A stretch of DNA of 64,000 nucleotides, from contig OZ116709.1 in the NCBI GenBank assembly GCA_964199315.1, positions 12,834,001 through 12,898,000 on the forward strand, in the 5' to 3' direction. The translations under genes were made by a program, and so were the position numbers. The notes under the pieces were generated by a model. The model was not told where the DNA came from. It saw only the letters and a program-made list of their open reading frames with translations, and searched no databases. Of this stretch, positions 1-52,800 are shown piece by piece. Source of the stretch: Orbicella franksi. Lineage: Eukaryota. Position 1 is the stretch's first letter, and each line of letters opens with the position of its first letter.

Positions 1-3000
1 GAACGCCATTCTCATCAGTATACTCTTCAACTTCCTCTTGTGGCTCGTCGTCGGATAGTGCAACAGGAAATTTAACTTCCGCTGGTTCGGTCCGTTGACC
101 TTCTCTTTTGATACTGGTTGTTGTAATGGTTCTCCTGACAATCCGCCTAACACGAACTCCGTTCTCATCAACATACTCCTCAACTTCTTCGGGTGATTCA
201 TCTTCCATTCCCTCGATTTCAGGAATAACTATTTCCCGATTCAAAGTTGCCGAAGGAACTCTCTCCATTACGTCATCGTGGTCAAGATCTTCCTTTAACT
301 CTGGTTTTGTTGACTGCGACGGCACAATTAAGAAAGAAATGTCTCCTGTAGGTTGTCTAGGTTCTTCTGATGCTGGTTCACTCTCCTCCATCCATTCAGG
401 AAGAACAACTTCACGTGTTTGCACTGAAGGAACAACATCATCAGAGTCAAAATAAACAGGAGCTGCTAACTCAAACATCTTTGCACCTGGACCGTCCTTT
501 GCTTCATCAACAGATGTACGGATTACACTTCTTGTTGTAATGGTTCGCCTCACAATTCTCCTCACACGAACGCCATTTTCGTCAATATATTCCTCGAAAT
601 CTTCTGGTGATTCATCTTCAGATGGTGTTAAAGGAAATTTAACTTCCACTGGTCCAACCTCGGCGCCTCCTCTTTTTTTTGTTGCCGTTGTAGCGATTCG
701 TTTAACAATTCTTCTCACCCGAACACCATTCTCATCAATATACTCCTCGACTTCCTCTGGACTTTCACCTTCTGATGATGCAACAGGAAATTTAACCTCC
801 ACTGGTTCAGTCCCTTCACTTTCTCTTTTAATACTGGTTGTCGTGATGGTTCTCCTGACAATCCGCCTCACCCGAGAACCGTTCTCATCAACAAATTCTT
901 CAACTTCTTCGGGTGATTCATCTTCCATTCCCTCGATTTCAGGCATAACTATTTCCCGATTCAAAGTTGTCGAGGTAACTCTCTCCATTTCGTCCTCGCG
1001 ATCAAGGTCTTCTTTTAACCCAGGTTCTTTAGGCTGAGAAGATAGAATTAAGAAAGAAATGTCATCTGTAGGCTGTCTCGGTTCTTCTGATCCTGGTTCA
1101 CTCTCCTCCATCCATTCAGGAAGGACAACTTCACGTGTTTGCACTGAGGGAACAACATCATCAGAGTCAAGGTAAACAGGAGCAGCTGACTCAAACATCT
1201 TTGCACCTGGTCCGTCCTTTGCTTCATCAACAGATGAACGGATTATACTTCTTGTTGTAATAGCTCGCCTCACAGTTCTCCTCACACGAACGCCATTTTC
1301 GTCAATATATTCCTCGAAATCTTCTGGTGATTCATCCTCAGATGGTGTTAAAGGAAATTTAACTTCCACTGGTCCAATCTCAGCGCCTTCTCTTTTTGTA
1401 GTTGCCGTTGTAACGATTCGTTTTACAATTCTTCTCACCCGAACACCATTCTCATCAATATACTCCTCGACTTCCTCTGGACTTTCACCGTCTGATAGTG
1501 CAACAGGAAATTTAACTTCTACTGGTTCAGTCCCTTGACCTTCTCTTTTGATACTGGTTGTGGTGATGGTTCTCCTGACAATCCGCCTCACCCGAGAACC
1601 GTTCTCATCAACATACTCTTCAACTTCTTCGGGTGATTCATCTTCCATTCCCTCGATTTCAGGCATAACTATTTCCCGATTCAAAGTTGTCGAGGTAACT
1701 CTCTCCATTACGTCCTCGGAATCAAGGTCTTCTTTTGACCCAGGTTCTTTAGGCTGAGAAGGCAGAATTAACAAAGAAATGTCTTCTGAAGGCTGTCTCG
1801 GTTCTTTTGATGCTGGTTCACTCTCCTCCATCCATTCAGGAAGGACAACTTCACGTGTTTGCACTGAAGGAACAACATCATCAGAGTCAAGATAAACAGG
1901 AGCTGCTGACTCAAACATCTTTGTACCTGGATCATCCTTCGCTTCATCAACAGATGTACGGATTATACCTCTTGTTGTAATGGTTCGCCTCACAATTCTC
2001 CTCACTCGAACGCCATTTTCGTCAATATATTCTTCGACTTCTTCTGGTGACTCGTCTTCGGATGGTGTAACAGGAAATTTGACTTCCACTGGTCCAATCC
2101 CCGGGCCTTCTCTTTTGATAGTTGCGGTTGTAATGGTTCGTTTTACAATTCTTCTCACCCGAACACCATTCTCATCAATATACTCCTCGACTTTCTCTGG
2201 ACTTTCACCGTCTGATGGTGCAACAGGAAATTTAACCTCCACTGGTTCAGTCCGTTGACCTTCTCTTTTGATACTGGTTGTGGTGATGGTTCTCCTGACA
2301 ATCCGCCTCACCCGAACGCCGTTCTCATCAACATACTCTTCAACTTCTTCGGGTGATTCATCTTCCATTCCCTCGATTTCAGGCATAACTATTTCCCGAT
2401 TCAAAGTTGTCGAGGTAACTCTCTCCATTACCTCCTCGGAGTCAAGGTCTTCTTTTGACCCAGGTTCTTTAGGCTGAGAAGGCAGAATCAAGAAAGAAAT
2501 GTCTTCTGAACGCTGTCCAGGTTCTTCTGATCCTGGTTCACTCTCCTCCATCCATTTAGGAAGGACAACTTCACGTGTTTGCACTGAAGGAACAACATCA
2601 TCAGAGTCAAGGTAAACAGGAGCTGCTGACTCAAACATCTTTGTACCTGGATCATCCTTCGCTTCATCAACAGATGTACGGATTATACTTCTTGTTGTAA
2701 TGGTTCGCCTCACAGTTCTTCTCACTCCAACACCATTTTCGTCAATATATTCTTCGACTTCTTCTGGTGACTCGTCTTCGGATGGTGTAACAGGAAATTT
2801 GACTTCCACTGGTCCAATCCCCGGGCCTTCTCTTTTGATAGTTGCGGTTGTAATGGTTCGTTTTACAATTCTTCTCACCCGAACACCATTCTCATCAATA
2901 TACTCCTCGACTTCCTCTGGACTTTCACCTTCTGATGATGCAACAGGAAATTTAACTTCTACTGGTTCAGTCCCTTGACCTTCTCTTTTGATACTGGTTG

Positions 3001-4240
3001 TGGTGATGGTTCTCCTGACAATCCGCCTCACCCGAGAACCGTTCTCATCAACATACTCTTCAACTTCTTCGGGTGATTCATCTTCCATTCCCTCGATTTC
3101 AGGCATAACTATTTCCCGATTCAAAGTTGTCGAGGTAACTCTCTCCATTACGTCCTCGGAATCAAGGTCTTCTTTTGACCCAGGTTCTTTAGGCTGAGAA
3201 GGCAGAATTAACAAAGAAATGTCTTCTGAAGGCTGTCTCGGTTCTTTTGATGCTGGTTCACTCTCCTCCATCCATTCAGGAAGAACAACTTCACGTGTTT
3301 GCACTGAAGGAACAACATCATCAGAGTCAAGATAAACAGGAGCTGCTGACTCAAACATCTTTGTACCTGGATCATCCTTCGCTTCATCAACAGATGTACG
3401 GATTACACTACTTGTTGTAATGGTTCGCCTCACAATTCTCCTCACACGAACACCATTTTCGTCAATATATTCTTCGACTTCTTCTGGTGACTCGTCTCCA
3501 GATGGTGTTACAGGAAATTTAACTTCCACTGGTCTAATCTCAGCGCCTTCTCTTTTGATAGTTGCCGTTGTAATGGTTCGTTTTACAATTCTTCTCACTC
3601 GAACACCATTCTCATCAATATACTCCTCGACTTCCTCTGGACTTTCACCTTCTGATGATGCAACAGGAAATTTAACCTCCACTGGTTCAGTCCCTTCACT
3701 TTCTCTTTTGATACTGGTTGTCGTGATGGTTCTCCTGACAATCCGCCTCACCCGAGCGCCGTTCTCATCAACATACTCTTCAACTTCTTCGGGTGATTCA
3801 TCTTCCATTCCCTCGATTTCAGGCATAACTATTTCCCTATTCAAAGTTGTCGAGGTAACTCTCTCCATTACGTCCTCGCGGTCAAGGTCTCCTTTTGACT
3901 GAGGTTCTCTTGGCTGGGACGGCAGAATTACGAAAGAAATGTCCTGTGTAGGTTGTCTCGGTTCTTCCGATGCTGGTTCACTCTCTTCCATCCATTCAGG
4001 AAGGACAACTTCACGTGTTTGCACTGAAGGAACAACATCATCAGAGTCAAGGTAAACAGGCGCCGCTGACTCAAACATCCTTGCACCTGGACCGTCGTTT
4101 GTTTCATCAACAGATGTACGAATTATACTTCTTGTTGTAATGGTTCGCCTCACAATTCTTCTCACACGAACACCATTTTCATCAACATATTCCTCGACGT
4201 CTTCTGGGGATTCGTGTTCTGATGGTGCCACAGGAAATTT
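1..4240. repeat. Coding tandem repeat, period 720 bp, about 5.9 copies in window; each unit is 153+153+414 bp
   Basis: Lines at 541, 1261, 1981, 2701, 3421 and 4141 align without indels; sub-repeat starts at 3421, 3574 and 3727. Confidence 0.97.
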
Positions 4241-6289
4241 CATCCTAGCCCTGGTAATCACCATTCTCTTCACCCGAACACCATTTTCATCAATATACTC
4301 TTCACTTTCTTCTGGTGACTCCTCTTCTGAGGGTACTACTGGAGACCTGATCTCCACCCGTTCAAGACCTTGATCTTCCCTTTTAATGGTTGTTGTTGTA
4401 ATGGTTCGCCTCACAATTCTCTTTATTCGAACACCATTTTCGTAAATATATTCTTCGACGTCTTCCGGCGATTCATCTTCTGATGGTACTACAGGAAATG
4501 TTACCTCGACGGGTTCAATTTGTCGAGCTTCTTTCTTAACAGTTTGATGTGGATCGTCCTTGACTTCATCAACCTCCATTGGTGCCTCGTTTTCAAAGGA
4601 CGAGCTTAGAACAGGGATTGTCACTTTTCTTTCAATGTTGATAAAAGACGCATCTTCTTTTATTTCAGGCCTTTCTTTAACCTGGGACACAGAGCTGGTA
4701 ATTCTTTTTGGATAATCTAAACCATCCGCTTTGAGAGGTTCTTCAGGTTTGTCAGGCACAACAACAAACCATTTGGGAACCCGTGGGTACCTTTTAACCT
4801 CGAGTACCACAATCTCTTCATTAAACTCGTCGGCTTCATCATCCTCTGATGTTTCATCATCTCCCTGTACATCGTCTATTTCCACTTGAGGGTCCGCATC
4901 ACGTTCCGTGGGGGGCGTAGGTGATGGTTCCTTGTGCGCCCGTTTTCGTGGTATCTCAGATATCTCGGACAGACCCTCTGGAGGTTCTATTCGTTTACGA
5001 TCGCGAATTTCTAGGCTTTCTTTGTCCTCTTCAAGATCCAGGAGGGATATTACAGGCCGGTGCCTTTCAACAACGGTTGCCGACAGTTCTTCGACGATGT
5101 CCGGTCTCTCAGGGATATGCACTGTCGGTAAAACGGGTTGACGTGGTTCTACCTGTATCGATGAGAGAGAAATCTCCTTTGGTGTTGAAGGTTTTTCTTT
5201 GACGGTTTCGAGCCACTCTGGGTAAGAAACATTTCTTTCTACTCTTGCAAGATTAAAATTTTCGTCTTGATCCATGGGTGGCTGATTATCCTCATGTATA
5301 GGCAATGATGCTGGTGACGGCAACTGAACAGTCACAGGTTGTACAGTTCTTTTCAACCGAGTCGTCAATGTGGTTTTGGTGAGCTTTTGTGTGCGACGAC
5401 CGTCGTCTGAGGTAAACGTGTGAATTCTTTCAGTTTCCTCGGGTCCTTCTCTAAGCTCGCGTTGACCATGATCTCCTGGTTTCAGGACAACTTTCACCGC
5501 CCCATCTCGCAACACCGTCTTGGGAGTAGTGGTAAAAGACGTCCGTACAACTCTTCTTACTCGCTGACCATTTTCGTCTGTGTACTCCTCTACGTCTTCT
5601 CCTGGCTCTGAAGGGACATCAACATCCATCTTCTGGGTGGGTAAACGACGCTCTGACCTGATTATTGTCTTGGTGGTCGTTACTTTAGAAATCCTCTTCA
5701 CCTGGCGACCTTCTTCATCAACGTATTCCTCGATAACTTCTTCGGGCTTCACTATCTTTCTTACTGAACGCTGCAAAGGAATACTCACCTCACTTGGTTC
5801 TTTCTCCAAGTAAACAGGTGCCGCTGATTCCTGCACGAGAGGTTGTCTACCACTGTCCTCCCCAGTCTCATCTTCATCTTCTTCGCTGTAATCTTCTTCA
5901 TCAGATGATCCTCCAAGAAGCGGTCTTCCCCACTCGAACACTGATTTACTTACTACAGCACCTTTCTCGCCTTGTTTAGTCTCTTGTTCGAGTTTGTGGG
6001 GGACTGGAATTTTAAAGCTTTCTATAGTGCCCTTTTTCACTGTGGTAACTCCAAAAGGAGACTTGTCCTCAATAGTTTTATCACCATCAGCGGTTCTTAA
6101 AGCAGACGTTCCTAATTCAAACGGTCTAGCAGATAGCTCTCCTTTGAATCTTGACCTTTCGTGAGTTTCTACGACTTGTGGCTCCGATTTAACTGATTTG
6201 GGAACCTCAAATCCTTCAATCTGACTCTTTTTTACTGTTGTGACCTTAAATGGTACGGTAGAATCGCCGTCTCCCTGAGGCTCATCTTC
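1..6289 (-). CDS. DST/MACF1: Giant exon, at least 2096 codons, acidic/Thr-rich with 240-aa tandem repeats, runs off the window
   Basis: Acceptor TTTCCTTGTATCTTTAG|GAA; no stop found in this frame on reading by eye; begins [21 protein letters not shown]. Confidence 0.9.
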
Positions 6290-28800: not shown

Positions 28801-31800
28801 TCTACCACTGGCATTTGTGATCTGGTAAGAGATTCAGGTTTCAGGGAAACACGGGTTTGATTAGTGATTTCGATCAGGGTTTTTTGGTTTGTTTGTTTGT
28901 TCATTTATTCTGTTTATTTTATTTTCTACTGAGGTCTGTAATAATATACACTTAAGAAAGAAAGAAACGAATCACTTCCTGATTACATGCAAGACATACT
29001 TTCCAAGAGTGATGTTCAGAGTTATCCAGCAGAATACACTCTTCACCTTTGTTGACAATATTCTGAAAAAAAAAATTAATTAAAAACATATTTAACATAA
29101 ACAACCGGAAAAATGAATTTCAATGTGTGTGCAGGTCTTTCACACATAATGCACCAACTGTGCTACAATCAGGCATATACCTTGACCACAAGCAAAGTAT
29201 TTTTCCTAACCTATCTTCCCACCCATGCAAAATTTTGGCCAAGATCTCACTGAGAATCTCGGTGAGTTCTTGGCTTCTGAGATTTTGGTATCTTGGTGAG
29301 ATCTTGACAAGATTGTGCTGAGATTTAGAGAGACTCAAAAATCATAGGAATATCCCAGCCATCTTGGTGATTATATCTTGCCATTCTCGACAAGAAATAG
29401 GAAATCTCGCCAGGATCTTGCCAATATATGAATATACAAACATCATGGCAAGATCTCTGCAAAGTCTCGGCAGTCTTGGCAAGATTTCGCCAATCTCAGC
29501 GAGATAATCGAGATCTCAGCGAGATCTAGGCAAAAATTTTGCACAGACACCGGAACAACGAGTGTATATCAGACTCACCTGCATGTTCTTGTAACTGCAC
29601 ACTGGGTCAACAAGAAGTTTGCTCTTTAGTTTGGATTTCCTCTGCGGCAACGGTACCACCTTTTTACTCAGGAGTTGTAAAGAACTTATGACATCTTTGA
29701 AGTCAACTAGTTCTTGTTTCATTTCCTGGTTAAATAAAATTCATGTCAATGACTTAATTTTCAAGTGTGGCCAACACCTAACTTCTCCTCACACCATCAA
29801 TGCGATGCCAGTCAGGTGACCATCACAGCCATCAATCAGGAATATAGCATCTTGACATATTACTGAATTCTCAGAGAGGAGAATTACTTTTCACAACTTG
29901 GCCAAATTGAAAGGGTTAAAATAAAAGAATCAAATTTAGTCACTTTTAAAAGTGTAGACAAACTGCAGATTGTCAGTAGTCTGTAATTTACAACTTTAGG
30001 GAGAACAAAACCTACAGATTTTGCACAGCATTAAAAAGAGAAAATATCAGGAAGAGGTTTAATGTTCAGCTTCCTTTCTCAAACCAATTAATAATTCATC
30101 ACGTTTAAACAAAGGAAAAATATCAAATACAGTTTAAAGGGAATAAAAGTGCTACTTAGCATTTCAAAAAATAATGTTAATTTTGTGATAAACTCAGAAC
30201 ATATGGCAGTGACCTGAATTATTCATGTAAGCCACACCTATTAACCTTGCCTGACCATTTGTTTACTAAGTATTGAAAATGAATTCTCGCTGAGTTCTGT
30301 GTGACCTAAAATATCCAGTTTAGATAGATACACTGAAACACTAAGCATAAAAGCAAGCCATAGGATAAGAAACACAAAACTGGCAAGAGCAAGGCATAAA
30401 TGAATGCTGCATAAACATAGAGCCTCCACTAGGGAAACCAACTAGAGAGACAATCTCAGATAGTGCAGAGTGCATTGCATAGTTCTGGCACAGTAGTCAC
30501 ACATGTCGTGTTCACTCCCGGTTTGTATTTACTTTGGTACCTAGGGCTTTTTCCCTTGCAGAATATGATCGGACAGAAACCTTGATAAGACATAACCTTG
30601 TCACAATCTTGGCAGTGCGTATGTTTCATGTCTGCACTTTCATTCGATATTTAATAATAGCTTACAGTTACTGTTTGTCAAGACAGTGTGGTGGCCTCAT
30701 GGTTAGTGTGCTTGTCCCTAGATCAAGTGGTCCAGGTTCAAGCCCTGCCGAGGACACTGTGTTGTATTCTTGGGCAAGACACTTAACTCTCACAGTGCCT
30801 CTCTCCACCAAGGAGTGTAAATGGGTACTGGTGAATTGTTGAGGAAACCTAACAAATTGCAAGGGAGTGACTTGCGATGGACTACCATCCCTTCCAGGGG
30901 GAGTAGAAATATTTCTAGCTGCTTCATGCTACAGAAACCGGGATAAGCTCCAGAAGCTACATGTATGAGCCAAGCGGCTCCAAGGCTTCACTTCAAGACA
31001 GCTTCCACATTTTATGCTGGTGTTTTACGCTGATTTTTGTTCATTTCAAAATTCAATAATACGTTGAAGAAGCAAATGTGACAATTTTAATTTTCACACC
31101 AACATTTGTAACTTGATACTTCTGTTTTCCTCGCAAAGGTATGTAACTTAAAATCCTTGTTTTCTCAAAAACTTAAGAGATGAACGGAAGAAAGTAAATA
31201 TCCTATGACAAAATGGAACAAAGTTTAACATCTTATGAAAACTTTTCACCGATAATCAAGAAGTAATTTAATTATCAAATACTCATAGAATACCACATTC
31301 TTATACAGTTGCCACCTCAGTGATATTGATTAATGCAATGGAGAAGCATTCACGAAGAAGTATTGAATGTCTGCACTACTCAGTTGACCGAAATTATATA
31401 TCCTACATCGGGAAACGAGTCCCGCCAAAAACTGAGTAAATTAATTTACGCTTTCATTACATGCCACAGAGTCTGCAGCAATATTTGAACACTTGGTCTC
31501 TTTCATAGGGACAATTGAAAGAAAAATAAATAAGCCACTAGGGAGAAGCAAAACGTTTCCATCCTTAATTTGAACTCTGGCAAAGTTTGATAATAGCAGA
31601 TGATATTTGATGAACCGAACTAGGGGTAATTCTAAAAGATACTCAGTCACAGTAGCGTTTTTTGCGCTAAAACGGGAGAAGTGACATTACACGAAAAATA
31701 ACTGCTGTCCTCGGTCATATCACAATCATAACAAATAAAGAACCACATGACTCTGGGGATGAAAATGGAGTATATCACGCTAACAATGCTAGAATGCATG

Positions 31801-34800
31801 CATCCTACATGTTGGGTTCTACCACAAGGAAAAGCACTCAACATTTTCGCTTCACATGATCTCAAATGAAATGCATCTTTCATCTAATATATAGTCAGCA
31901 CGAATGCTAACTAATCTGTGCATGCGTTTAGGGAAAATTGGTTTTGTTCTGAAGAGAATAGTACCACAAGGAGGACAAGAGGTTTCCTAAACCAAATATA
32001 TAACTTTGTGATATTATGATTACAGTAAGGCAGGTGATACACATTTTTACGTAGTGCACACAGGCACCTACCCTCCCCAACCACTTTCTTGCCTGAAGAC
32101 TAATTAATTAATTGATATTAATTAACCAAACAAACATTAAAGTTTACACCTTATGGCCTTGTTGCCATAGTGGACATCAGCCCCCAAACCATCCCAATAG
32201 TGCAGTCTGCACTAAAAAATTAATGATAAACAAATGAGCTGATTCATGCATATGGACACAAGGAGATTAATGACACCAAAAATATTCGGGCATAACTTTC
32301 TTTCAAGGTCATGCATAAAGGTCACCCCTGGTGAATTGTATTATGCTGCATACAATATGATATTGACGAAAAAGAGGCTATCTTCTGCTTTTATAAAATG
32401 TTAAATTATACATGTTAAGATCACAAAACAATGCCACTTCAGGAAGGTTTAATCTGACGACCCACTGATTAAGGACTTTGTTAATACAGATCAACAAATC
32501 TTTCTCTCTGCTGGACAGTGAGGTGAATGAAAGAAGGGACTTATGCTGCAATGATTATGTAACATTTAAGTACAAAATGTGGCTGGAGTCACAGATAAGT
32601 AACTTTTTTAAATGAGATACAAAGTTTTTAAATTAAGGTGAGCTTAGAATGCAACAAAATGATTTTAACAGCTATTTCCTCGTTTGAGACATATTATCCA
32701 AACTACTTATTAGACCATAGCAAAATAGCATCTTAAAATCACAGTCAAAAGAAGGTAATTCTCATAGAATATAATATAATGTTGGTGCCTAAAACGTTTA
32801 AGTTGAATCCTTTTGTAAATGACAAAACAAAACATTTGCATATTAAATGCAAAACGCTTATGCAGATCGAAACAAGAGCAAGGATTTTCCAAAAATTCTT
32901 CTCAAAGCACATCATCTAGTCAATCAGTGGAATAAACGATAAATAATAGAAAGAAAACTAATTATAAACTGATTTTTTCTTGGACAAACTAACATCGACA
33001 CACAGGCATAACTTTGTTCTAATTAAGACCGAAAGTGGGAAAATTGCACTAGACAATGAAAGCCTCCCCGTAAGTCAGCCTTTCGACAAATATTTACCCA
33101 TACTTGGAAATCTATTAACAAGAAACACTCGCTGTCTTAATTTGAACGAGTAGCGCGCGTGCCTGAAAAGAACTGAAATTAACACCACGGGAAGTTACTC
33201 ACGCGAAACATGTCACTCGCTGTTTACAAATTTCCAAATCGACTATTCGACCCATTAACAACAACCGAGATCTAAGTAAAAACGACACAGCAACTACTGT
33301 TTTGAAATCAAAAGAATTAAACATCGATTTCTCAATTTTTCAAATTTCATTACCGTTTCTATTTAATCTAGGCAAAATGATCAGTAACGAAATACCGCGC
33401 CAAACGTGGAGTATTTACGAAAATGCAAATTCTACAAGGAAAACGGAGTGCACTAATAACAACTTTCGCGACAGACCGCAAAATTTCCACACTTCCCAAC
33501 ACCTCGAGATAGTCAATCAAAAACGTTTCGGAGAGAGACAGAAAGATCAGAGTTACCTGCTTAAACTGGAGCATGTCAGTAACAACATCCTTAAACTTTG
33601 GTTCCAACTCTGTTTCGGTGCCTGTCTTTGGCCCGCGGAGAAGCAAAACATAACGCTCTTTCGGTGTAGTGACACTGCTTTCATCAACTTTTCGAGCGAA
33701 CACATCCCGAATATATTCCAACGAATATGCAATGATCGTTCCCATTTGTGACTGTCTAACGATCGGGAAACTTTCCAGTGGAATTCCTGCATGAACTGCT
33801 TCTTCCGAAGCAGGAAGCACTCTTTCCCTCAAGAACTTTTGCCATCGGCTGTCGTGAATCAATAGGTCGTGATTGAAGATGGAGTGCTGTGTTGTTCGCC
33901 ATCTTACAACAGTAGCTGTACTGTGTAGTGTTCGTCTGATTGCAAAATAAACAAGAGTACAAGGATTTTTGATCATTTGCGAAACCCAACTGACAGGATA
34001 GAGCAGTTTGGAGAAAAATACTCGTGAGGAACTCGCTGTCCTTATGGAAACCGGTCGCGGTCGTCGTCCATGTAATTTGTTTTCGCTCCTTGCTCGGTAA
34101 ATGAAGTATAAAAGTGAAAGTAACGCCGCGACAGCGACAGCAGCCGATGTAAACAAAATGAGCAGTAAAAGTGGCAGCGGATTCCAATGCAACACGACAC
34201 ACATTTTATGACTTTGGCGATGGCGTTCTCGCCAAGATTATTTCGATTGCACGGCAAACCTGGCCAACACCTGCATATGTTTTGTTTCCGCTTATAATCC
34301 CGTCAGACGGCTGTAAAACCAAAGTTCGATGAAGCGGAGTGTTTTTTTGTTGACTGCATGGTCGTCAAACACGTGGATTTGACCTGACTGAATGCAACAT
34401 CCGCAGGTAGTCACGGATTCCCGCTTCCAGGTCAATCATTCACTTCATTTTTCATGGAGAAAGACTTTCTTCGAGTTGGTCTTCAAGTTACTTTCGAGCG
34501 TTAGCAAGCTTCCTGTTTACCTTGTTGAAATTCAGCTCTATAAAATTCCGTGTAAACGTGTAAACAGACAGTGGACACCAAGCGATAGCAAATGGCTTAC
34601 GCGCGCGCCAAGTACAGTTGAAACCGGACACGCAAAGACAAAGATCTTGAATTTTAATCACCGCACTGAAATATTAATAACTATAAAATGCAAAAATACC
34701 AACAAATTTGTTTTTCACATCGCTAATCGGGTATAAAAACCCCAGTTGTTGTAAAGTGGGATCCAAATTACTGCTGGAAATGACCGCGACATACGGTCAA

Positions 34801-37800
34801 TACAAGCAAGAAATTGGTCAAATTTTGCAAGGAATTTATCAGATATTAGTAATATTCTGAGAGTAACACAGTTTTTCGTTTTCACCCGTTAATGTCATTA
34901 TTCCTTAGAAAATGTAGTTAAATTTAGTATCAAGCAAGTCAGGGAAACAGCCGCAGCTCATGAACAGCAAAAGACTTTAATTACATAAAATAAACAGGGG
35001 TAAAAACAGATTTGAACGTTTGTTTATTATGCAAATATAATTCCAAGTGGTAACCAGATGAAGAACAATTCACATTTCACAGTCCATTGAAGCACCAATC
35101 AATCTTGTCGTTTCTAAGAGTTCTTCTGAAACAAATAATTTGTTTGTCTTATATTGTGCTCTCTGCTCCTTGTCGATTGGACAGAAAAGGCGTTCGCTAG
35201 CGTGAAAAGTGAAAATGAACGCGCACTGCAATTTCAATTTCGAAGAAAGAGACTTCGAAACAGTTGTCAGTCTGAAAGGGTCGTAACCTTTTATCTAAAA
35301 TGGCGCATATTTTATTTCAAAGTAGGTTCTAGTCGATTGAGCTTCTTTTGCTTTTTATACGCCTACACACATTGACACAGCATGTCACGCTATTTTGGGA
35401 CAATTTCTACTGGACATTCCCTAAGTTACAAGGCTCCAATTGTACTGTTAAGATGTTTTGATTATATGAAAACTATCCGTTCTCATTTTACTTGAAAACC
35501 ACAACTAATAGACACACTGAAACTTAGCAACGGCTATGAGCGTGCTTTCTAAATGTAAATTAGCGTTTGAATAGTAATGTTAAGACTTATCCAGAGTTTT
35601 CTTTCAATAAGTCGCGACGTCTGACGCGGGTCACGGCAAGAAACATAGTCCGTTGGTCACATCTATTGCTGGCAAAGGGAGACTGTTGTTAATCTAGGAA
35701 AAACGGGAACTAGAACTTTTCTTTCTCTTTTCTGTCGATTTGTTAAACAATATTTTTAACTCGGCATATGCTCTAAGAGCATAAACGCCTCATTGAGATA
35801 CTCCTGTTTTCTTACTTGTCTGGTACCTCAGTACCTCCTTAGTCCACAGATTGTGAATAGTTTGTAGATTCTCATCACCATTAACCTAATTGGTCAGAAC
35901 CAAGTAAACCAATCCAACACAGGACTGTTCGGTTTACATATTTATTGCCCATTTAATGGTATCGCTAAAAATTCACTGTCGTTAGTGAAAAGCTGCAAGT
36001 GGCAACTCCGTCCCCACTCCCCACGCACAAAGAAAGGCGTGCCCGATAGCCTAGGGCTGGTGCATTTTGATTATTTAAAATTTATCACGCAAGTAAAAAA
36101 AAATGATGAGGGGGGGGGGGGGGGTAGAGGCTACTGAGAATGACCTTCGGACTGGTACATCATTGTGACAGCTTGCTTGAAGGGTAAGCTCGAAAACTGG
36201 TTTTCTTTGCACCCTGCTTACCCCATCTCGAAAGTCAACAATCCCCTCAAAAAAAACAGTGATTCCCTATTGAAAATACCACAAGGGATACAAGTAGATG
36301 CCAAATATGTCTTGTTTTGGTAAACCTTATTTCTTTTTCCAAGAAAATACACTGTTGCACAATCGCCGAAAAAGCTAAAAGAGAACCTTTAACAACTCTG
36401 TCCAACAGTTATACCACCATGCAAGAGGAACCGAGAGATTTTACTTTATAGCTCGTAAATAATGTAAGCAAAACTGCAGAGGGTAATGACCGTTCCTTAC
36501 AATCTTTACTCAAAGCTCTGGCAATTTCACATTTGCCACGATTTCGTTGAAAGTTGGGTCGGCCCACGTACGATGTACTTCCTTCAGTTTCCGAACCCAG
36601 CTTCGAAAAGAGTCAGTCAGAAGCCTTGTCTATTGTCTTGATATCTTTTGGTATCAACTGTTAGGGCGTATATATGGCCGGATTTACGGCCGGTAAATAC
36701 CAAACCATATCTTTCCGATACATGTTCCCGCAATATCAGGCTCGTTAGGTCAACCACTGGTAATTTGGTTCGACTACTTCTCGCCAAAACACGAACCATG
36801 GCTTGGACAAACTCGCCTGACATGCCGTCGACGCGTACCAAAAAGGTTCCATTAGGTATAAGAAATACTCGCAAAAAAGTGGAAAACCTTTGAAAGTAGC
36901 GATAGGAAAAGATTACTTTCCAACCTACGTTTTCACCATGGAAATGCGAAAAGAATCGTTTTTCCTACTACATTAACTGAACACGGGGACGTCCAGGTTT
37001 CTTTAAAATATAACTTTAATTTACAAGTAGAGACAGATGGATGTATGGCGGGTAGAGTTGGGTAGTGGCAGATCAAAAGTGCAAAGGAGATGAGTATAAG
37101 AAGTCAGTTGCTAATGTAAAATTTGGTAAAATTTAGGCCTGCAGTAATTACGAGAATTTAACCGGCTGAAGGTTTTGTATTCCAAGCGTCGTTCACTTTT
37201 GACTTTCAAATCGGTTAGAAATTCTTTTTCTTTTTTTGTCCCAAGCACTTACCGTCAGGCTGTTCAAAGCCTGTTCAGCGGCATCACGTGCAGAGATGTT
37301 CTGTACATCATATTCCGTGTTCAGTCTTTCAACTAACTGAATCATCTTCTGCTCGGTTGTATGTGCATCCTGGAAATACTGTATGTGATGAAGATAAAAA
37401 ATGCACTTTACCACTCAAAAGCTGAAATTCAGATTCAGATCACGGAAGCAATAAAAAGAGAAAAGAGCCCCCCCCCCCCCCCACCCCTTGCCAGATAAAT
37501 GCGAAAAGCCCCGCAAACGCGCAATGTTTTCCACCAATGAAGTCGGGGTATGGCGTTAATTTTTTTCATTTATATTGACCAAGATAATATTTATCTACGA
37601 AATTTCAACTGATTGTAGATTAACAAAATTAATATGAACTTTTGGAGTCGCTAGTTTCAGTCTCACTTTTTTGTTGTGTGTTATTGGAATCCGGGGTTTT
37701 TCTCCACACATTACGATACAAAATTAGCTTCAAAAATAAATAAATAAATAAATTGATTAATCAAGAGGACCTATATATATCCAATAAACTGATCACAGCG

Positions 37801-46800: not shown

Positions 46801-49800
46801 TCCGTCGTGCCATTGCCATGACAACAGTTATGCCGCTGGTCCTGTTTTAATTAAGACTAAAATTTCCAGATTTTATCTTAAACAAGGATCATCCACCCCC
46901 ACCAATCTAATGGGGAGAGTTAAGACAATATGGGAATCATGTGTGTTCTGAGCAAGACCCTCTGTCCCACCTTAAAAGGTTGCAAATGGGGATATTTGGT
47001 TTTTCACAGAATGAGACTGGAGCCAAGAGTGTTGCCATGGCAACAACATAGTAGGTGTCATTCTGTTTCTTTTGTGATGTACATTCCTGGTGCCACGTTT
47101 GAAGAACACTGCTTTAATATTTCTAGAGTTATTCTCGATTGAGTGTTGTGCTGTTTTGGTGGAACCACCTATGACGTCATCACTTTCCTCATTTGCATAA
47201 TACAAAAATGTGAATATCCCTAAAACAAAAAAAGATATTCCAAAAAGGAAAACGCCATTCTTCTTTACTTTGGAAAGCCTTTCAAATAAGCAGGAATTAT
47301 TTCTTACTTCATAGGCACTTTAAAATACAATTTAAACTTGCACCAACCAACCTTTATTCCTTGGACAGTCTTTGGGAACCTCTGTTTTTCCAGTCTTTGT
47401 ATGACTCTGTTAATTTCCACCACAAGCACCTTTGCCAGGTTACAGTACTCTTCAAACTTAAAGAGCTTTTCCTACAAAAGAGAATAGGACAGGAAATGCA
47501 TTGTGCATGAAATCTGAAATGACTAAACAATACTTATTAGAGATTGCATCCATTAAAGTGCAGTTTGATAATTTTTGGCATTAAAGCCACGGGATGGAAA
47601 AAGAGGTTGGAATAACAAGATCTTGTGAACTTCTTGTTCACATTTACAACATATACACTTACATTATCATGCAGTGCTTCCTGAACAGTGGGCTCTTTTG
47701 GAAATATTTCGTACAGTGAGGAAACATAAGTCATAACTGACTTTTCATCTGGATGGTCTGTGTGAACCAAGTCTAACACAAAAAGAAAAAAACAGGTGAG
47801 TAACTATAACAAAAGATTTGTCATGGCAGACTCCGGGTAGGAATCTAATCTACTAACCATAAGACAATCTCACCTTAAAATGCTTTCTTAGAAGCAATAC
47901 ATGTACCTCATTTAATGAAGTAATAATGGGACAATGTTAGAGAGCAACGCTAGACACAAGACACAAGGAGGATTTGGGCTCAAGGTTGCATTTGATGTAT
48001 ACATGTACCTAAACACATGACATAATTATATTGACCTTGGTGGTATGAGATACACATATTGACAAATAATTATTCATTCCTTTTTTTTAACCTTCAACAT
48101 CCAACAGCCTAGGAACACCAAGTTCTTTCTCTGCAACATGAAATGAGTACTCCAGATTTTGATCAGGGCTTGCTTTATTCAGCTTTGAAAAGTCCACAAG
48201 ATCTGGCCTATCATTAGGCAAAAAATATCATTAATTAAAATATCATTAATTATTACAATGAACGTTGGCAATGTTTCCAAGAATTTTGATGTGTATTGAA
48301 TGTGGTAAGCTCTAGTGACTTCATCACATAAACAGAAACTGTCACTTTCTTTCACTTTTATTAGTTACCTATATCTGTGGATAATTGCATTGAAAGCTAG
48401 GCCATCTTTCCATGATGAGGTAAAGTTTCCAACTTCCACTGAAGGGTACCTGGAAAAAATTTTTTTTTCTGATCAATTCATTACTTTTAGAGTCAGAATC
48501 TTTAACACCTAAAGAAAAGACATGCTGATATCAAACAAACAGTAAGCAGTTTTTCATTCAATCAACAAGCTAATCCATTAACAAAAAAATTAAATACCCT
48601 TTCTACTGTAACTGGATAAAACTTTTCAACTTAAGGAGGAGGGGCATTGGGGTATATTAGAAACTGCAAAACCGAAGGAAAAATTATCCAAAACCGCAAA
48701 AAAAATTCGACCAAAACCGAAAACCGTATACAACACCGCCAAAAACCAATACAATAGTGACAAGTGGGGCATACAGAGCAAACTATACTAACACTAATTT
48801 TATCAAAGTATTTGTGAATGTCATGGACTTGTCTGAAGCCTTCGTATCTTTTAGTATCATTTAGCTTCTGCAGGCTTCTCTCTTCCCTTTTCACTTTAGA
48901 TCTAAACATGTTTTGCTTTCAAAAATTCTCACCGTCTTTCACCCCCTCCTCCTTAAAAAAAAAAACGCAACACAATCCACAATTGCTTCTTCCGTTGCTG
49001 GCACGGAAGGTACGATGACCAAATGATTGCTCTGGTCTGCGAGGTCAAAGTCTCAGGCGTCATTCAAGATGTGTGATCCCCTACCATGACATTTAGTTTG
49101 TCACGCATTCCACTCAATAACTTTGGCATTTCACGGCTACCGGAACCCAAATAGGACAAAATAGGAAAAACCAAATACCACATTGGATACCAAAACCAAA
49201 AAACATGAAAACTGAAAACCAGATGCTAAAAAGCGAAAAATCTACAAACCGCAATGAACACAAAAACCGAAAAACTGAAGTCTTTTGGCACAAAAACTGA
49301 AAAACCGATCTAAAAAACAGCCAAAACCGCAAACCGAAAATCCCAATCCCCCCTCCTTAAGCCCAGTCCCCTTTTCACTTTCAGAAGTCTTTTTTTTGTA
49401 CTATCTCATTATTTATTAATATCTAATAACTTACCTTATCAAATAATCAACCATGTAAAGTAAACCTTGGCACCTTTACCAAACTTTCATATTTAGACAT
49501 TTTTCCAACATACTTTACGCTTAATTAAATAATTTCTGTGCAACCAATAACCAAGGCTACAAATAGAATGATCAATAAAAAGCTATAATTTGCAAAGGCT
49601 TCTACTGTTCCAGCCAATTGCTTTGTAGTTGTCAACAAATACTTCGACTTGTTAGAGTTTGGATCTCATAAAGTGCAAATTCAGTGGAATATTAGTTTCA
49701 AGCATTATAATAGGACTGTGAAAATTGCATCATTGTGATTGGTTGAAAGAAGGGAAATTCTTCGTTCATTTTCAATTCCTCAGTCATATAAGAAATGAAT

Positions 49801-52800
49801 AACAGTATAAAAGCTCCAGCAAGCAAGGATTTACACAAGTTATGGCATTTGAAAATTCTTTCAAACAGTACTCACCTAAAGGCTGATGCAATATGGAGAA
49901 AATTTGCAAATGTCACTTCTAGTGTAAATCCTTATTTTACTTGCATTCATCTGATTACCTTATATACTAATCTTTCTACAAAGAACTGCAGTTACTCACG
50001 ACTGATTCATTCATTCATTTATGCAGTTACCGGTAAACCCTGCTATCTCAACCTGTTAAGGGCACTAAGATAGTTTGAGATGTCGGAGAATTTAGATAGC
50101 TGATAGCAAGTGCCTTAAATAGTGGGGGTTTCATTAAAGTATTCAGCAGGAAGGCAATTGGTTTTCACAGGCAGACTCGTTTTGAACTTGCTGCTATCTG
50201 GAACTCGAGAACTGAATGATACCATTTTCTCTTGGATATACTTTAGTTCATGATAATATTTCAGGAGTTTCATTAACGGCCAGGCATGGGGCAAATTGAC
50301 CAGCTTTGAGGACAAGTTTGCCTGCCTGGTTTGACCATCTAGAGGAATTTTTTCTTTACTTAGAAGTTCAGTTTGAGATAACCAAGTTTTGAGATAACCA
50401 GGTTCTATTGTATATTTTCTGATGTACATACACATAATCACTCTGGAATACATGCAGATAAAGATTTACATAGAAATAGAGCCAAAACACAGCATACCCC
50501 TGAGTTACTTTCTGTGCCCACAGGAGAAGTGCCTCTTTGGCTGTCATTTGGTCCTGTTTTCCAACAACTTCCACCTCTGATATCTACATATATTAATACA
50601 GTAGCAAGTCAGTACACAACATATGTTTGGGAAACAGGTTTTAAAATCATTGAAGTAATGGTTGGAAGCATTTTCAATCAACAACCGTGTACATGTACTG
50701 ATAGGTGGAGTGGGTTAGATATAGCCTGGAATCCCATAGGACAGACTTATATTTGTACAAGGATCTTGCCTAAACTTCAAGCTTACATGAATGGAATGCT
50801 GTTATAAACTAACATCAAAATTTATGAAGATACATGTAAAAAGTCTCTACAGTAGCAATATAATATAAAGAATAAAATGAACCACAGTTGTGAACTTTAA
50901 TGTCACTCTTTTAGAGATTTCATGACCTCAACAAGTTTAAGAGGATCATTATATGTGTGTAAAGGATTTGGAATCCAAGATGGAGGGAGGTGGGGCATTA
51001 ATATTTTTGGAAGTTCACCGCAACCCATACATATTTACCATTAATTTGTATCTAACCTGGTAGTGCAAGATGATTGTCCATATCAACCCAAGGGTAAGTT
51101 TGGGATTACCATCCACAATGTCTTCGCTTCGAATGTTCACAAGTTTAACCTGAAGTTACAAAAACACCAGTGACATCGAGTTTTGTGTGAGGACTACAGA
51201 AGTGAAGGGAAAGTTGACAAGATCTTGTTCACGGATGTGTACTATACTGGAAAGCAAGGTGGGAAGGGTATTGCACTGTTTTATTTTGGGCTACTGAAGC
51301 TCATAGTTCTTGTGTTTTGTTTAGGGACTACATGTATGTAGGCATTTTACTTCACTGTGTCTTTTTTCACCTAAATAAAAATTCATTTTCTTGTATACCT
51401 GCTGGGACTGAAGAAACTCCAATGCAGTCTGGACATTCTGAAGTCTGTGAAATCGTAACTGACCTCTTTCTCTTGGCTAAAAAAATATATAAGAAAAGCT
51501 TTTTATTACATGCATGTATTAAATAAACAGCTGGATCACTTAAAATCAGTGAAAAGAAAAACACAAATCAAATTCTGCAAGAATGAAAAATGCCATGGAA
51601 TCACAGTCATGCTTTTTGATTAGTGTTCCACAGCTGTTAAACAACACCTAAGTTTTCAACCTCATACAGAAATGTGGCCAATACAATCATGTTGATTACA
51701 CAAACTTCCTTTTGGTTAAATCTGCAAATGGGTCAGCCATACCCCTGAAACTAATTTCAGTTTTGCAGCATAAGCAAGTTACAGAGCTCTCCAAGTAATT
51801 TATTGCCAGTATGTGGGATTGCAGATGGCATTTAACCTGTAGTCATACATGGTGTCGGCAAAGGAATCACCTCACTAATGTGGGTGACCTAAAACTACAC
51901 TGTATGAGCCTAAAGATAACGATATGAAAAATGTTTAAAGCCGTGAGAGAATTTCAAACCCCTCCTTAGGCCGAAAATGTCTCGGCATAATTATTATTCT
52001 ATCCCAATTTTGGAACACCAACTCCCTTGACCTCATGAAAGACAAAGGATCCTTCTAAAGGAAGATTTGTAAGCTTAAAATACTTGAAGATCTTTGATGA
52101 TAATTTTGACAATCGTAAAGAATTATGAGCAGGATTATCTTGAAGATCTCAGTAATCTTCAATAGAATCTTCAAAAACTCCTCACCAAGATCTTCAAAGA
52201 TCTTGAAAAATTTTTGGCAAGGATTTGGTACAGTCAGTACATTTAAATAACAACATTTAGCTGATGGTATAGTGGTAAATAGCTATAGACACCTGTATAC
52301 CAGGGAAAACGTACCAAGTTAGTTTTACAAAGAAGCTCTAACAGTAGTAAAAGATTATTTCCATCTCGAAGTTCTTCATAAAGATCCAAAATTCTCACAT
52401 TAACCTAAGGAGAGAATTCAAAATGATAAGAGGTAAATTTCATCTGGATATCTTACACATCAATATTACTGGAGAAGTACATGTACATGATCTCTCTTTG
52501 ATTTATATGACCCAGCAGAGGAAAATATTGTAAAATGGCAGATTTTGAAAATAATGTTGACTTGTAAATAACCTAGCTAGCCATATAATAACTCTCCCCT
52601 GGATCAGTGGCAATAGGTCCATAAGTGATATATGTAATATAGGTCCATAAGTGATATATAATATAGGTCCATAAGTGATATAAACTGCTCCAATAATGTT
52701 CTCATTTCTTTCCTCATTACAATTGTTCCATTACAGCAGTATTAAACACCAAGTTAACATGCAGTGTACCTTTGTGTAACTATTTTTTAAATTTAATAAT

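Follow-up and report, generated by a model that had tools for sequence, protein, structure and literature searches.

Actin, microtubules and membranes are linked mainly by spectraplakins, and what these proteins do depends largely on which alternative N-terminal lead they carry. To our knowledge, the lead of dystonin-a2 is the sole membrane-spanning spectraplakin lead, and the loss of dystonin-a2 drives ER, Golgi and neuronal pathology in dystonia musculorum mice. Dystonin-a2 (BPAG1a2, mammalian DST isoform 2) has an alternative 5' exon that provides an N-terminal transmembrane lead, and it is found at ER, perinuclear and nuclear-envelope membranes (PMC3352950; PMC3279385). Isoforms that start internally and lack both CH domains have been described as well, namely Shot type D, MACF1c and BPAG1e, and it has been suggested that Shot-D is missing the plakin domain too (PMC3352950, Table 1; bioRxiv 10.1101/122010). 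The canonical spectraplakin of Stylophora pistillata contains CH, plakin, spectrin-repeat and GAS2 parts (PMC9145010); that study covers canonical isoforms only, and no membrane-anchored cnidarian spectraplakin isoform is described in the literature that we searched. A transmembrane lead (dystonin-a2) and isoforms without the actin-binding domain (Shot-D, MACF1c) are already known, and the coral exon described here varies on these types from mammals and flies. We consider it highly probable that this is a genuine, conserved alternative 5' coding exon of a coral spectraplakin, which lies in an intron of the plakin domain, starts at position 34204, is spliced from 33557 to 29725, and encodes a predicted membrane lead.

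The coral isoform resembles dystonin-a2 in that it is also defined by an alternative 5' exon with a (predicted) N-terminal transmembrane lead. However, the lead of dystonin-a2 lies upstream of CH1-CH2 and the full plakin domain is kept, whereas the coral lead would take the place of the CH domains and of the plakin domain's N-terminal half. A phmmer search with the coral lead against 1.84 billion representatives returned six matches, all of them ORFs of the same coral family, and no similarity to the vertebrate isoform-2 lead, which could hide behind the cluster representatives of that collection. The leads of Shot-D, MACF1c and BPAG1e differ in another way, as none of them is described as transmembrane, and BPAG1e keeps its plakin domain and ends in plakin repeats whereas the coral lead joins the body just before the SH3 and adds ~130 conserved residues. 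Nesprins/KASH proteins, like the predicted coral isoform, have a long spectrin-repeat rod with a single-pass anchor at one end and a cytoskeleton module at the other, but the comparison with an inverted nesprin is a functional analogy only: nesprins are anchored by their C-terminus, where a KASH peptide contacts SUN proteins within the lumen of the nuclear envelope, whereas the predicted coral anchor is N-terminal with an outer tip of nine residues, and a Pfam search found no KASH motif in the coral lead.

The host gene and its domain map

Positions below are those of the window, that is, the whole 64-kb stretch of coral DNA that was analysed. Three exons of the host gene are referred to throughout.

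29579 to 29725, minus strand: shared acceptor exon (EMKQELV...CSYKNMQ), 49 codons, phase 0, from the sequence, PF17902 and RNA contigs.
29000 to 29062, minus strand: next constitutive exon, holding the SH3 core, with an approximate 3' end, from PF17902 and RNA.
37253 to 37378, minus strand: canonical upstream exon (...ALNSLT), swapped for the alternative exon as the partner of 29725, from PF21019 and RNA.

The exons of the CH domains lie 5' of the alternative exon, at 53-47 kb, where PF00307 matches at 51018-51155 (26.1 bits, E 1e-5), 48090-48227 (E 4e-4) and 47540-47803 (weak) and where typical CH peptide strings are visible in the translated frames; the alternative exon follows 13 kb downstream of the last of them. 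In the canonical upstream exon (37378-37253), positions 2-43 of the 68 positions of PF21019, a plakin spectrin-like repeat, are matched, below the cut-off because the piece is a fragment. The SH3 profile PF17902 (SH3_10) matches at 28955-29119 with 28.3 bits (cut-off 22.8), and its positions 1-24 fall on residues 25-48 of the shared acceptor exon, which thus comprises the end of the plakin spectrin-like repeat and the start of the SH3. At 29725 the acceptor reads ccag followed by GAAATGAAA. A search of PDB sequences with the two flanking exons, meant to name the spectrin repeat, gave no real matches, the pieces being too short. A GAR domain (PF02187, 78.2 bits) is found at G000:C12:12765058-12765177 on the minus strand; this match is on the same contig and strand as the gene in the window, 69 kb past the low end of the window.

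With tandem CH domains, a plakin SH3 and a GAR domain present, the host gene is, as judged from these domain matches, a spectraplakin of the MACF1/dystonin/Shot type. It is of the same type as the Stylophora pistillata gene, with matches to CH, plakin SH3 and GAR inside the window or close by. Since the CH exons are upstream of the alternative exon and the acceptor lies just before the SH3, an isoform that begins with this exon would be without the actin-binding domain and would keep only the C-terminal half of the plakin domain. This agrees with a preliminary description of the locus, which had the lead replacing the pair of CH domains together with the first half of the plakin domain; the CH matches at 51.0, 48.1 and 47.5 kb and the start of the SH3 in the acceptor exon are placed as that claim supposes.

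A conserved open frame in the plakin-domain intron

The alternative exon and its edges are as follows.

33557 to 34204, minus strand: alternative 5' coding exon (CDS part), 216 codons, Met1-Gln216, from the ORF, its homologs and dN/dS.
34202 to 34204, minus strand: start codon ATG with A at -3 (aaaATGt), in an invariant MCV start.
33555 to 33556, minus strand: splice donor GT (CAG followed by GTAACT), phase 0, with GT in nine of nine loci.
29726 to 33556, minus strand: intron of 3,831 bases that is spliced out of the alternative isoform, from the RNA joint.

The preliminary description had placed the exon inside an intron at 29726-37252, as a 216-codon frame with an upstream in-frame stop and AAAATG that ends at the donor in phase 0 and fits the EMKQELV acceptor at 29725. 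All of these elements were found: the canonical donor (CTGACG followed by gtaagt) is at 37253 and the acceptor at 29725, the frame occupies 34204-33557 of the minus strand with a stop 12 codons 5' of its ATG, and both boundaries are phase 0. Read without splicing, the frame runs on to a stop at 33368 and gives 278 aa. Among the open frames that lie wholly within the window, the 216-codon frame is the longest, the runner-up having 168-169 aa, and 216 or more open codons occurred in none of 300 first-order Markov simulations of the intron (maximum 194). It is not a chance ORF. Only one copy of the exon exists in the genome, so it is not a repeat, and an origin as a transposon ORF was rejected because the exon is both single copy and syntenic. 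An Rfam scan of the whole intron gave no matches.

Homologous ORFs form more than 25 clusters (27 in one protein-collection search and more in another) with 45-94% identity. The frame is intact in nine loci, with lengths that are multiples of three, the donor GT is kept in all nine, and dN/dS is 0.13-0.21 in each pair where it could be calculated. In an alignment of 22 sequences, with ORF lengths of 211-352 aa, Met1 through Gln216 and Val217 (a GTN codon) are kept, after which similarity collapses and tails of 2-118 unconserved residues follow. At the other end, the MCV start is invariant, an A occupies -3 in six of six aligned loci, and the sequence 5' of the ATG is poorly conserved across the aligned loci, with an in-frame stop 4-17 codons 5' of the ATG in the window and in loci L007, L008 and L009. 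The order of upstream exon, alternative exon and downstream exon is the same, in the same orientation, in four distinct relatives (L001/L002, L003, L007 and L009), and in L004 the downstream exon also lies 3' of the alternative exon; the shared acceptor exon is 88-92% identical in L001, L003, L007 and L009. Some homologs appeared to have lost the transmembrane part because their gene calls start at M77 or later, but tblastn found the full 216-codon frame intact in these loci, and we regard the shorter calls as gene-caller artefacts. These comparisons indicate that the alternative exon is protein-coding and conserved under purifying selection. Conservation of the frame and donor in related corals, which the preliminary description had named as a check, was thus found in syntenic positions, with dN/dS of ~0.15 and with conservation that stops exactly at the donor.

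Splicing to the shared acceptor and the 5' end of the transcript

In the RNA run X1, one contig joins 33557 to 29725 at a depth of 55.4, with 3831 bases skipped and GT..AG borders when read on the minus strand (CT..AC on the plus), which is the junction that the preliminary description proposed to look for in RNA; the joint comes from a single contig of a single library and has 26 letters on its shorter side, where caution applies below 30. The contig of the alternative exon has a depth of 57.8 in X1, against 10-16 for single-copy pieces of the intron, and a depth of 12 in X2, against ~3.5-4.8 for the intron. In X1 the exon contig begins exactly at 33556, fitting a graph branch at the donor. 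The canonical junction of 37253 to 29725 is seen as loose ends in both RNA libraries (X1 and X2), the loose end at 29726 reading into the 37253 exon, and another loose end at 29579, also in both, reads into AATATTGTCAACAAAGGTGAAGAG, so the shared exon 29579-29725 is spliced at both ends in the RNA contigs. The presence of these neighbouring constitutive junctions implies that X1 and X2 contain spliced mRNA. Two poly-A raw-read runs, X22 and X24, gave zero coverage of the alternative exon and only ~2x on the shared exon. No spliced ORF with the alternative lead was found in the protein collections; all matches there are collinear with the genome and continue as FKQV with a variable tail.

Unspliced RNA is present in X1 as well: a contig at 33083-33585 crosses the donor at a depth of 31.3, ~2x the rest of the intron, and drops off near 32.9 kb. 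Together with an ATTAAA at 33367, directly after the stop, and with database ORFs that are all unspliced, this contig is what one would expect of an independent nested gene, whose transcript is not spliced to the spectraplakin, ends within the intron and encodes a single-pass membrane protein of ~278 aa. However, the spliced joint is deeper than the unspliced path (55 vs 31), and the raised coverage extends ~350 bases beyond the ATTAAA. The collapse of both similarity and ORF length exactly after Q216-V217 also speaks against a functional tail, as does the donor itself, which has GT in nine of nine loci and is abutted by the best-conserved cytosolic residues. An independent nested gene is, in our estimate, unlikely, and the ~278-aa product could exist as a minor form beside the spliced isoform.

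Upstream of the ATG, one further region was delimited.

34205 to 34900, minus strand: presumed 5' UTR and core promoter region, from conserved blocks, depth steps and CpG count.

Our best guess places the transcription start near 34.65 kb. This position is suggested by the steps in depth of the X2 contig, which going upstream are 12, 9.6, 4.6 and 1.8 over an intron background of ~3.5-4.8, and by a conserved TATA-like block near 34.68 kb (GTTATTAATATT at 34682-34671, with the block kept in six of six loci). An E-box, CACGTG, lies at 34375-34370 and is kept in five of six loci, and six upstream ATGs between 34455 and 34276 open uORFs of 2-24 codons. The preliminary description had also pointed to CpG-dense, promoter-like flanks, and of this claim the density stands: CpG o/e is 1.52, 0.93, 1.29 and 1.08 in the four 500-base intervals of 33001-35000, and 34001-34500 has the most CpGs (34) of any such interval in the stretch. 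CpG o/e is 0.1-0.5 over 22-33 kb, with one 500-base exception at 27.0-27.5 kb (0.96), but on the other side it remains mostly 0.6-1.3 (up to 1.34) out to ~43 kb, so the flanks are the edge of a ~10-kb undepleted block and not a discrete island. The CpG argument for a promoter is weaker than was stated. We infer that transcription of the alternative exon as a first exon is driven by a promoter of its own. Its start could also be far upstream, with a long leader and many upstream ATGs, since an X1 contig is collinear with the genome up to ~36.05 kb, at least 1.8 kb 5' of the ATG, and the stretch 34700-35900 is present in the same RNA libraries as fully as the alternative exon, which means that occurrence in these libraries does not single out the exon.

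The same two observations would be accommodated if the sequence were a cassette exon inside the transcript, a 'poison' exon or a long segment of retained intron, transcribed from the canonical promoter, in which case the ATG would be no start and the canonical protein would be truncated or down-regulated. For a poison exon, conservation of 216 open codons that encode a hydrophobic helix and a basic flank would be unnecessary, and the purifying selection covers the whole frame from Met1, with the first nine residues the most conserved. The poor conservation and the in-frame stops 5' of the ATG also disagree with an internal exon, as does the lack of a conserved acceptor anywhere from the last upstream stop to the ATG in the aligned loci. 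We regard this explanation as very unlikely, and a 5' coding exon that is translated from the ATG at 34204 remains our preferred reading.

The lead peptide and its predicted membrane anchor

The 216-residue lead was divided into five segments by conservation, hydrophobicity and charge.

34178 to 34204, minus strand: N-terminal tip, residues 1-9 (MCVVLHWNP), predicted lumenal or exterior, identity 0.89, uncharged.
34097 to 34177, minus strand: predicted transmembrane helix (signal anchor), residues 10-36, from Kyte-Doolittle and AF2.
34055 to 34096, minus strand: basic flank, residues 37-50, from the net charge in 20 homologs.
33950 to 34054, minus strand: variable linker, residues 51-85, mean identity 0.45.
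33557 to 33949, minus strand: conserved, predicted cytosolic lead, residues 86-216, mean identity 0.66-0.81.

The hydrophobic stretch and the basic residues after it, on which the preliminary description had based a membrane anchor, are present and kept in 20 homologs. The best 19-residue Kyte-Doolittle mean in these is 2.3-2.9, residues 1-36 are without charge, and the side N-terminal to the helix is uncharged in all 20, whereas the 15 residues after the hydrophobic stretch carry a net charge of +2 to +6 in every one. The tip has the highest mean pairwise identity of all segments (0.89), while the identity of the helix residues is merely 0.61, implying that hydrophobicity is what is kept there. 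AF2, run on 22 sequences, places a helix at residues 10-47 with pLDDT of 87 (residues 11-20), 92 (21-30), 80 (31-40) and 49 (41-50); the transmembrane helix alone is confident, the mean pLDDT being 52 and that of the cytosolic part below 55. The linker at 51-85 has the lowest conservation in the exon and low AF2 confidence, and the last 26 residues of the lead, abutting the donor, are the best-kept cytosolic part. Residues 86-216 had no match in Pfam, in a PDB-profile search or in the ESM Atlas. For the lead as a whole, Pfam gave a sub-threshold LapA_dom match on the hydrophobic helix and nothing else, the profile search against PDB sequences gave no matches, and the ESM Atlas gave no features. 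With a basic flank on the C-side of the helix and none on the N-side, the positive-inside rule suggests a cytosolic C-terminus, and the lead fits the behaviour of a signal anchor of this orientation.

The same features need to be weighed against other targets, in which the N-terminus is not an ER-type bilayer anchor but a cleaved signal peptide, a signal anchor of the mitochondrial outer membrane or a monotopic hairpin, and the protein goes elsewhere or is not membrane-integral. Signals of the Tom20/Tom70 type consist of an N-terminal anchor followed by basic residues, which also describes the coral lead with its immediate basic residues, and the 36 uncharged residues can be read as a hairpin. 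However, the core of ~27 residues, at Kyte-Doolittle values of 2.3-2.9, is too long and hydrophobic for the h-region of a signal peptide, and it exceeds typical outer-membrane anchors in hydrophobicity. Directly after the core come charged residues, without a cleavage motif of small residues, and cleavage with secretion would place the cytoskeletal domains in the lumen. These other readings of the N-terminus seem to us very unlikely.

For the alternative coding exon, we propose that transcripts containing it are translated from the ATG at 34204 and spliced from 33557 to 29725 in phase 0, so that a 216-residue lead would substitute for the two CH domains and the first half of the plakin domain and join the common body ~24 residues before the plakin SH3. 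The lead would consist of the 9-residue tip, a hydrophobic helix of ~27 residues, the basic flank, the variable linker and ~130 conserved residues of no known family. The helix may act as an uncleaved N-terminal signal anchor that is inserted co-translationally in a type III topology, so that the basic flank stays on the cytosolic side and the short N-tip faces the lumen or the exterior. The giant spectrin-repeat rod would then be left in the cytosol, as would the EF-hand and the GAR microtubule-binding end if the transcripts reach the end of the gene, and the resulting protein would tie a membrane directly to microtubules without actin binding. In this scheme the membrane insertion, the topology, the identity of the membrane and the 3' end of the isoform are inferred.

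A more specific and only tentative proposal is that stony corals have a lineage-specific, integral-membrane spectraplakin in which a type III anchor and the ~130-residue module are combined, the rod and GAR domain coupling the membrane to microtubules. Candidates for the membrane are the plasma membrane, which the length of the helix (27 residues) suggests, and the ER or nuclear envelope, and the ~130-residue module could repair the truncated spectrin-like repeat beside the SH3 or recruit a coral-specific partner.

Gene models deserve checking for the alternative exon, because no predicted protein that we found joins it to the spectraplakin body, and the exon offers an isoform-specific marker for the coral cell types that use this isoform. 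If the proposed structure is true, an early-branching animal would have a second membrane-spanning lead, unrelated to the first and placed so as to remove actin binding. The isoform would provide a natural 'membrane-to-microtubule only' spectraplakin for study, and direct membrane anchoring of spectraplakins would have arisen more than once.

An alternative coding exon conserved among relatives

When the ORF, the donor, and the acceptor were re-read from the sequence, the coordinates, phases, and peptide strings of the preliminary description all proved correct, and an alternative exon is confirmed inside intron 29726-37252 of the coral spectraplakin gene. The sites are as follows, with the identity of each exon between the window and its relatives.

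34204-33557, minus strand: alternative coding exon ("lead"), 216 codons, ATG at 34204 (aaaATGt), end CAG/GTAACT; identity 57-74%
33556-33555, minus strand: donor GT of the alternative exon, CAG/GTAACT
29725-29579, minus strand: constitutive acceptor (downstream) exon, 49 codons, phase 0, acceptor ccag/GAAATG at 29725; identity 88-92%
37253, minus strand: 3' end of the canonical upstream exon, donor CTGACG/gtaagt; identity 77-81%

An in-frame stop lies 12 codons 5' of ATG 34204, and an unspliced reading would stop at 33368 (278 aa). The 216-codon frame is the longest ORF wholly within the 64-kb window (the runner-up has 168-169 aa), and a first-order Markov model of the 7.5-kb intron, simulated 300 times, never gave 216 open codons (maximum 194).

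A 5.8-billion-protein collection yielded 27 clusters with 48-94% identity over the whole 216 residues, and a second search added more. All of these homologue clusters are unnamed ORF calls on coral genomic or RNA contigs, without any Pfam domain. Across 22 aligned sequences, similarity runs from the common MCVVLHWNP start up to the donor, with K215, Q216, and V217 (the GTN codon of the splice donor) invariant; past V217 similarity is nil and the ORFs end 2 to 118 residues later. We regard this alignment as decisive for a coding exon that ends at the donor. Conservation of the frame and donor in relatives, a check proposed in the preliminary description, was found in the DNA as well: the frame is intact in nine of nine loci (609-654 nt, all multiples of three), GT forms the next two bases in all nine, and NG86 dN/dS is 0.13-0.21 in every calculable pair (dS 0.2 to above 2). 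Gene calls starting at a later Met were rejected as genuine shorter forms; they are caller artefacts, as tblastn gives residues 1-216 in one frame there. The exon is single copy in the 497-Mb genome.

Synteny, the other comparative check, is likewise conserved. In four distinct relatives (loci L001/L002, L003, L007, and L009), the homologous ORF is flanked by the orthologues of exons 37378-37253 and 29725-29579, with orientation kept; in L004 the downstream exon comes after it. From the identities listed, the lead evolves faster than the constitutive exons, yet it is clearly constrained. In the orthologous introns, a reverse transcriptase (RVT_1) ORF lies between the upstream and alternative exons (L007:5385-6614) and a DDE transposase ORF lies downstream (L002:19521-20669); the position of the alternative exon is kept despite this transposon turnover. 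In the window, the same intron carries a ~270-bp interspersed repeat (30690-30960), probably a SINE- or MITE-like element, with no Rfam match; across the genome, 4,648 first-look candidates came up, with 40 scored copies (87-91% identity, many contigs), and the repeat accounts for a very high RNA-library depth (25,000-54,000 summed). The acceptor of the canonical exon 37378-37253 is preceded, ~90 bases upstream, by a run of ~20 G with one T near its start (GGGGTGGGG..., 37468-37490, minus strand).

RNA junctions and the candidate transcription start

Two RNA libraries, X1 and X2, were read as assembled contigs with depth. The predicted junction from 33557 to 29725 is present in X1, where a contig of depth 55.4 joins 29724/5 to 33556/7 and leaves out the 3,831 bases between them, bounded by CT..AC when read on the plus strand and hence by GT..AG on the gene's strand. 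The shorter side of this joint, seen in one contig of one library, has only 26 letters, but the joint falls at exactly both sequence-predicted sites and is therefore very unlikely to be spurious. The X1 exon contig (depth 57.8) has its first base exactly at 33556, where a branch between spliced and unspliced paths is expected because a G follows CAG in the intron and in the spliced-on exon alike. In X2, the intron has a depth of 3.5-4.8 and the exon contigs reach 12 and 9.6. Loose ends in X1 and X2 mark the canonical junctions (37253 to 29725, and 29579 to the SH3 exon), so both libraries contain spliced mRNA. As a crude figure, the alternative junction represents about one quarter of the shared exon's summed depth in X1; two poly-A raw-read runs gave zero coverage of the alternative exon. 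Past the donor (32900-33556, minus strand), the unspliced X1 contig has about twice the depth of single-copy intron pieces (31 versus 10-16), falling near 32.9 kb, and ATTAAA lies at 33367, directly after the unspliced stop; there may be a minor transcript that ends inside the intron.

Upstream, the X1 contig is collinear with the genome up to ~36.05 kb. In a second index search, 34700-35900 was represented in the same libraries as fully as the exon stretch (0.76-0.86 versus 0.72-0.84), so presence in them is no mark of an exon. There are hints of a candidate transcription start near 34.65 kb: steps in X2 depth (12, 9.6, 4.6, 1.8 going upstream), a conserved TATA-like block and E-box, and the CpG peak. 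The block, GTTAT(A/T)AATA (34682-34671), is the best-conserved upstream element across six loci, and the E-box CACGTG (34375-34370) is conserved in five of them. Between the block and the main ATG lie six upstream ATGs (34276-34455, minus strand; uORFs of 2-24 codons), whose conservation is not obvious in the six-locus alignment. If transcription starts near 34.65 kb, the leader would carry these short uORFs, which would regulate translation of the lead.

The flanks had been described as CpG-dense and promoter-like. The CpG count does peak at 34.0-34.5 kb, but the region is a block edge rather than a discrete island: CpG o/e is 0.1-0.5 across most of 22-33 kb (with a single 500-base window at 0.96), rises to 0.9-1.5 at 33-36 kb, and stays at least 0.57 in all windows from there to ~43 kb. 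Over the whole window (1-64000), o/e forms a strong mosaic within this single gene, near 1 at 1-22, 33-43, and 53.5-64 kb and depleted to 0.06-0.5 over most of 22-33 and 43-53.5 kb. Such a pattern resembles a gene body in which methylated and unmethylated blocks alternate, and the block edges may be sites of internal promoters.

Predicted membrane anchor and domain content

The first 36 residues of the lead contain no charged residue. In all 20 homologs compared, the hydrophobic stretch has a best 19-residue Kyte-Doolittle mean of 2.3-2.9, and it is followed by 15 residues with a net charge of +2 to +6. Identity is only 0.61 in the predicted TM helix, versus 0.89 in the 9-residue tip, implying that hydrophobicity is conserved and not sequence. 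AF2 places a helix at residues 10-47 (pLDDT 80-92 per 10-residue block over 11-40), with low confidence elsewhere. Arg/Lys residues come directly after the ~27-residue core, and a small-residue cleavage motif is absent; these features fit a putative uncleaved signal anchor. The positive-inside rule would place the C-terminus in the cytosol, the sole topology that would be compatible with the cytoskeletal domains behind the lead. Residues 86-216 are conserved (identity 0.66-0.81) and have no match in Pfam, PDB, or Atlas. The best-conserved cytosolic stretch adjoins the splice site, and one might speculate that a helix continues from the lead into EMKQELV..., possibly making up for the truncated repeat.

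Pfam searches of exon pieces placed CH-domain fragments at 51.0, 48.1, and 47.5 kb, positions 2-43 of 68 of the plakin spectrin-like repeat PF21019 in the upstream exon, and the plakin SH3 PF17902 across the acceptor exon (positions 1-24, residues 25-48) and the next exon (27-50). With a start at 34204, the product therefore lacks both CH domains and all sequence ahead of a point ~24 residues short of the SH3, bearing out the claim that the lead replaces the CH domains and the N-terminal half of the plakin domain. Farther along this contig and strand, 69 kb past the window's low end, is a GAS2/GAR domain (78 bits); with the CH and plakin pieces, this makes the gene a full spectraplakin (CH, plakin, rod, and GAR) that spans at least 123 kb. 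In a giant exon (2-6289, minus strand), the frame stays open for more than 2,096 codons and continues off the window's low end; the exon has a tandem repeat of ~720 nt (240 aa) judged by plus-strand ORF spacing. Overall, the preliminary interpretation finds support where it concerns the exon, its splicing and conservation, and the domain geometry.

Spectraplakin isoforms are defined by alternative leads, and the N-terminal TM domain of BPAG1a2/dystonin-a2 puts it on membranes of the ER and the perinuclear region (PMC3352950; PMC3279385). Shot-D, MACF1c, and BPAG1e are without the actin-binding domain; Shot has four promoters, and its type D may be without the plakin domain too (PMC3352950; bioRxiv 10.1101/122010). 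The single cnidarian spectraplakin study located relied on canonical isoforms only (PMC9145010), and among 1.84 billion representatives no sequence relatives of the lead were found outside the coral family. Like dystonin-a2, the coral isoform has a predicted TM lead, but from an internal start, which costs it actin binding and half of the plakin domain; like Shot-D, MACF1c, and BPAG1e, it is without the actin-binding domain, but with a predicted TM lead. The coral isoform is thus the union of two known ideas, a TM lead and the loss of the actin-binding domain.
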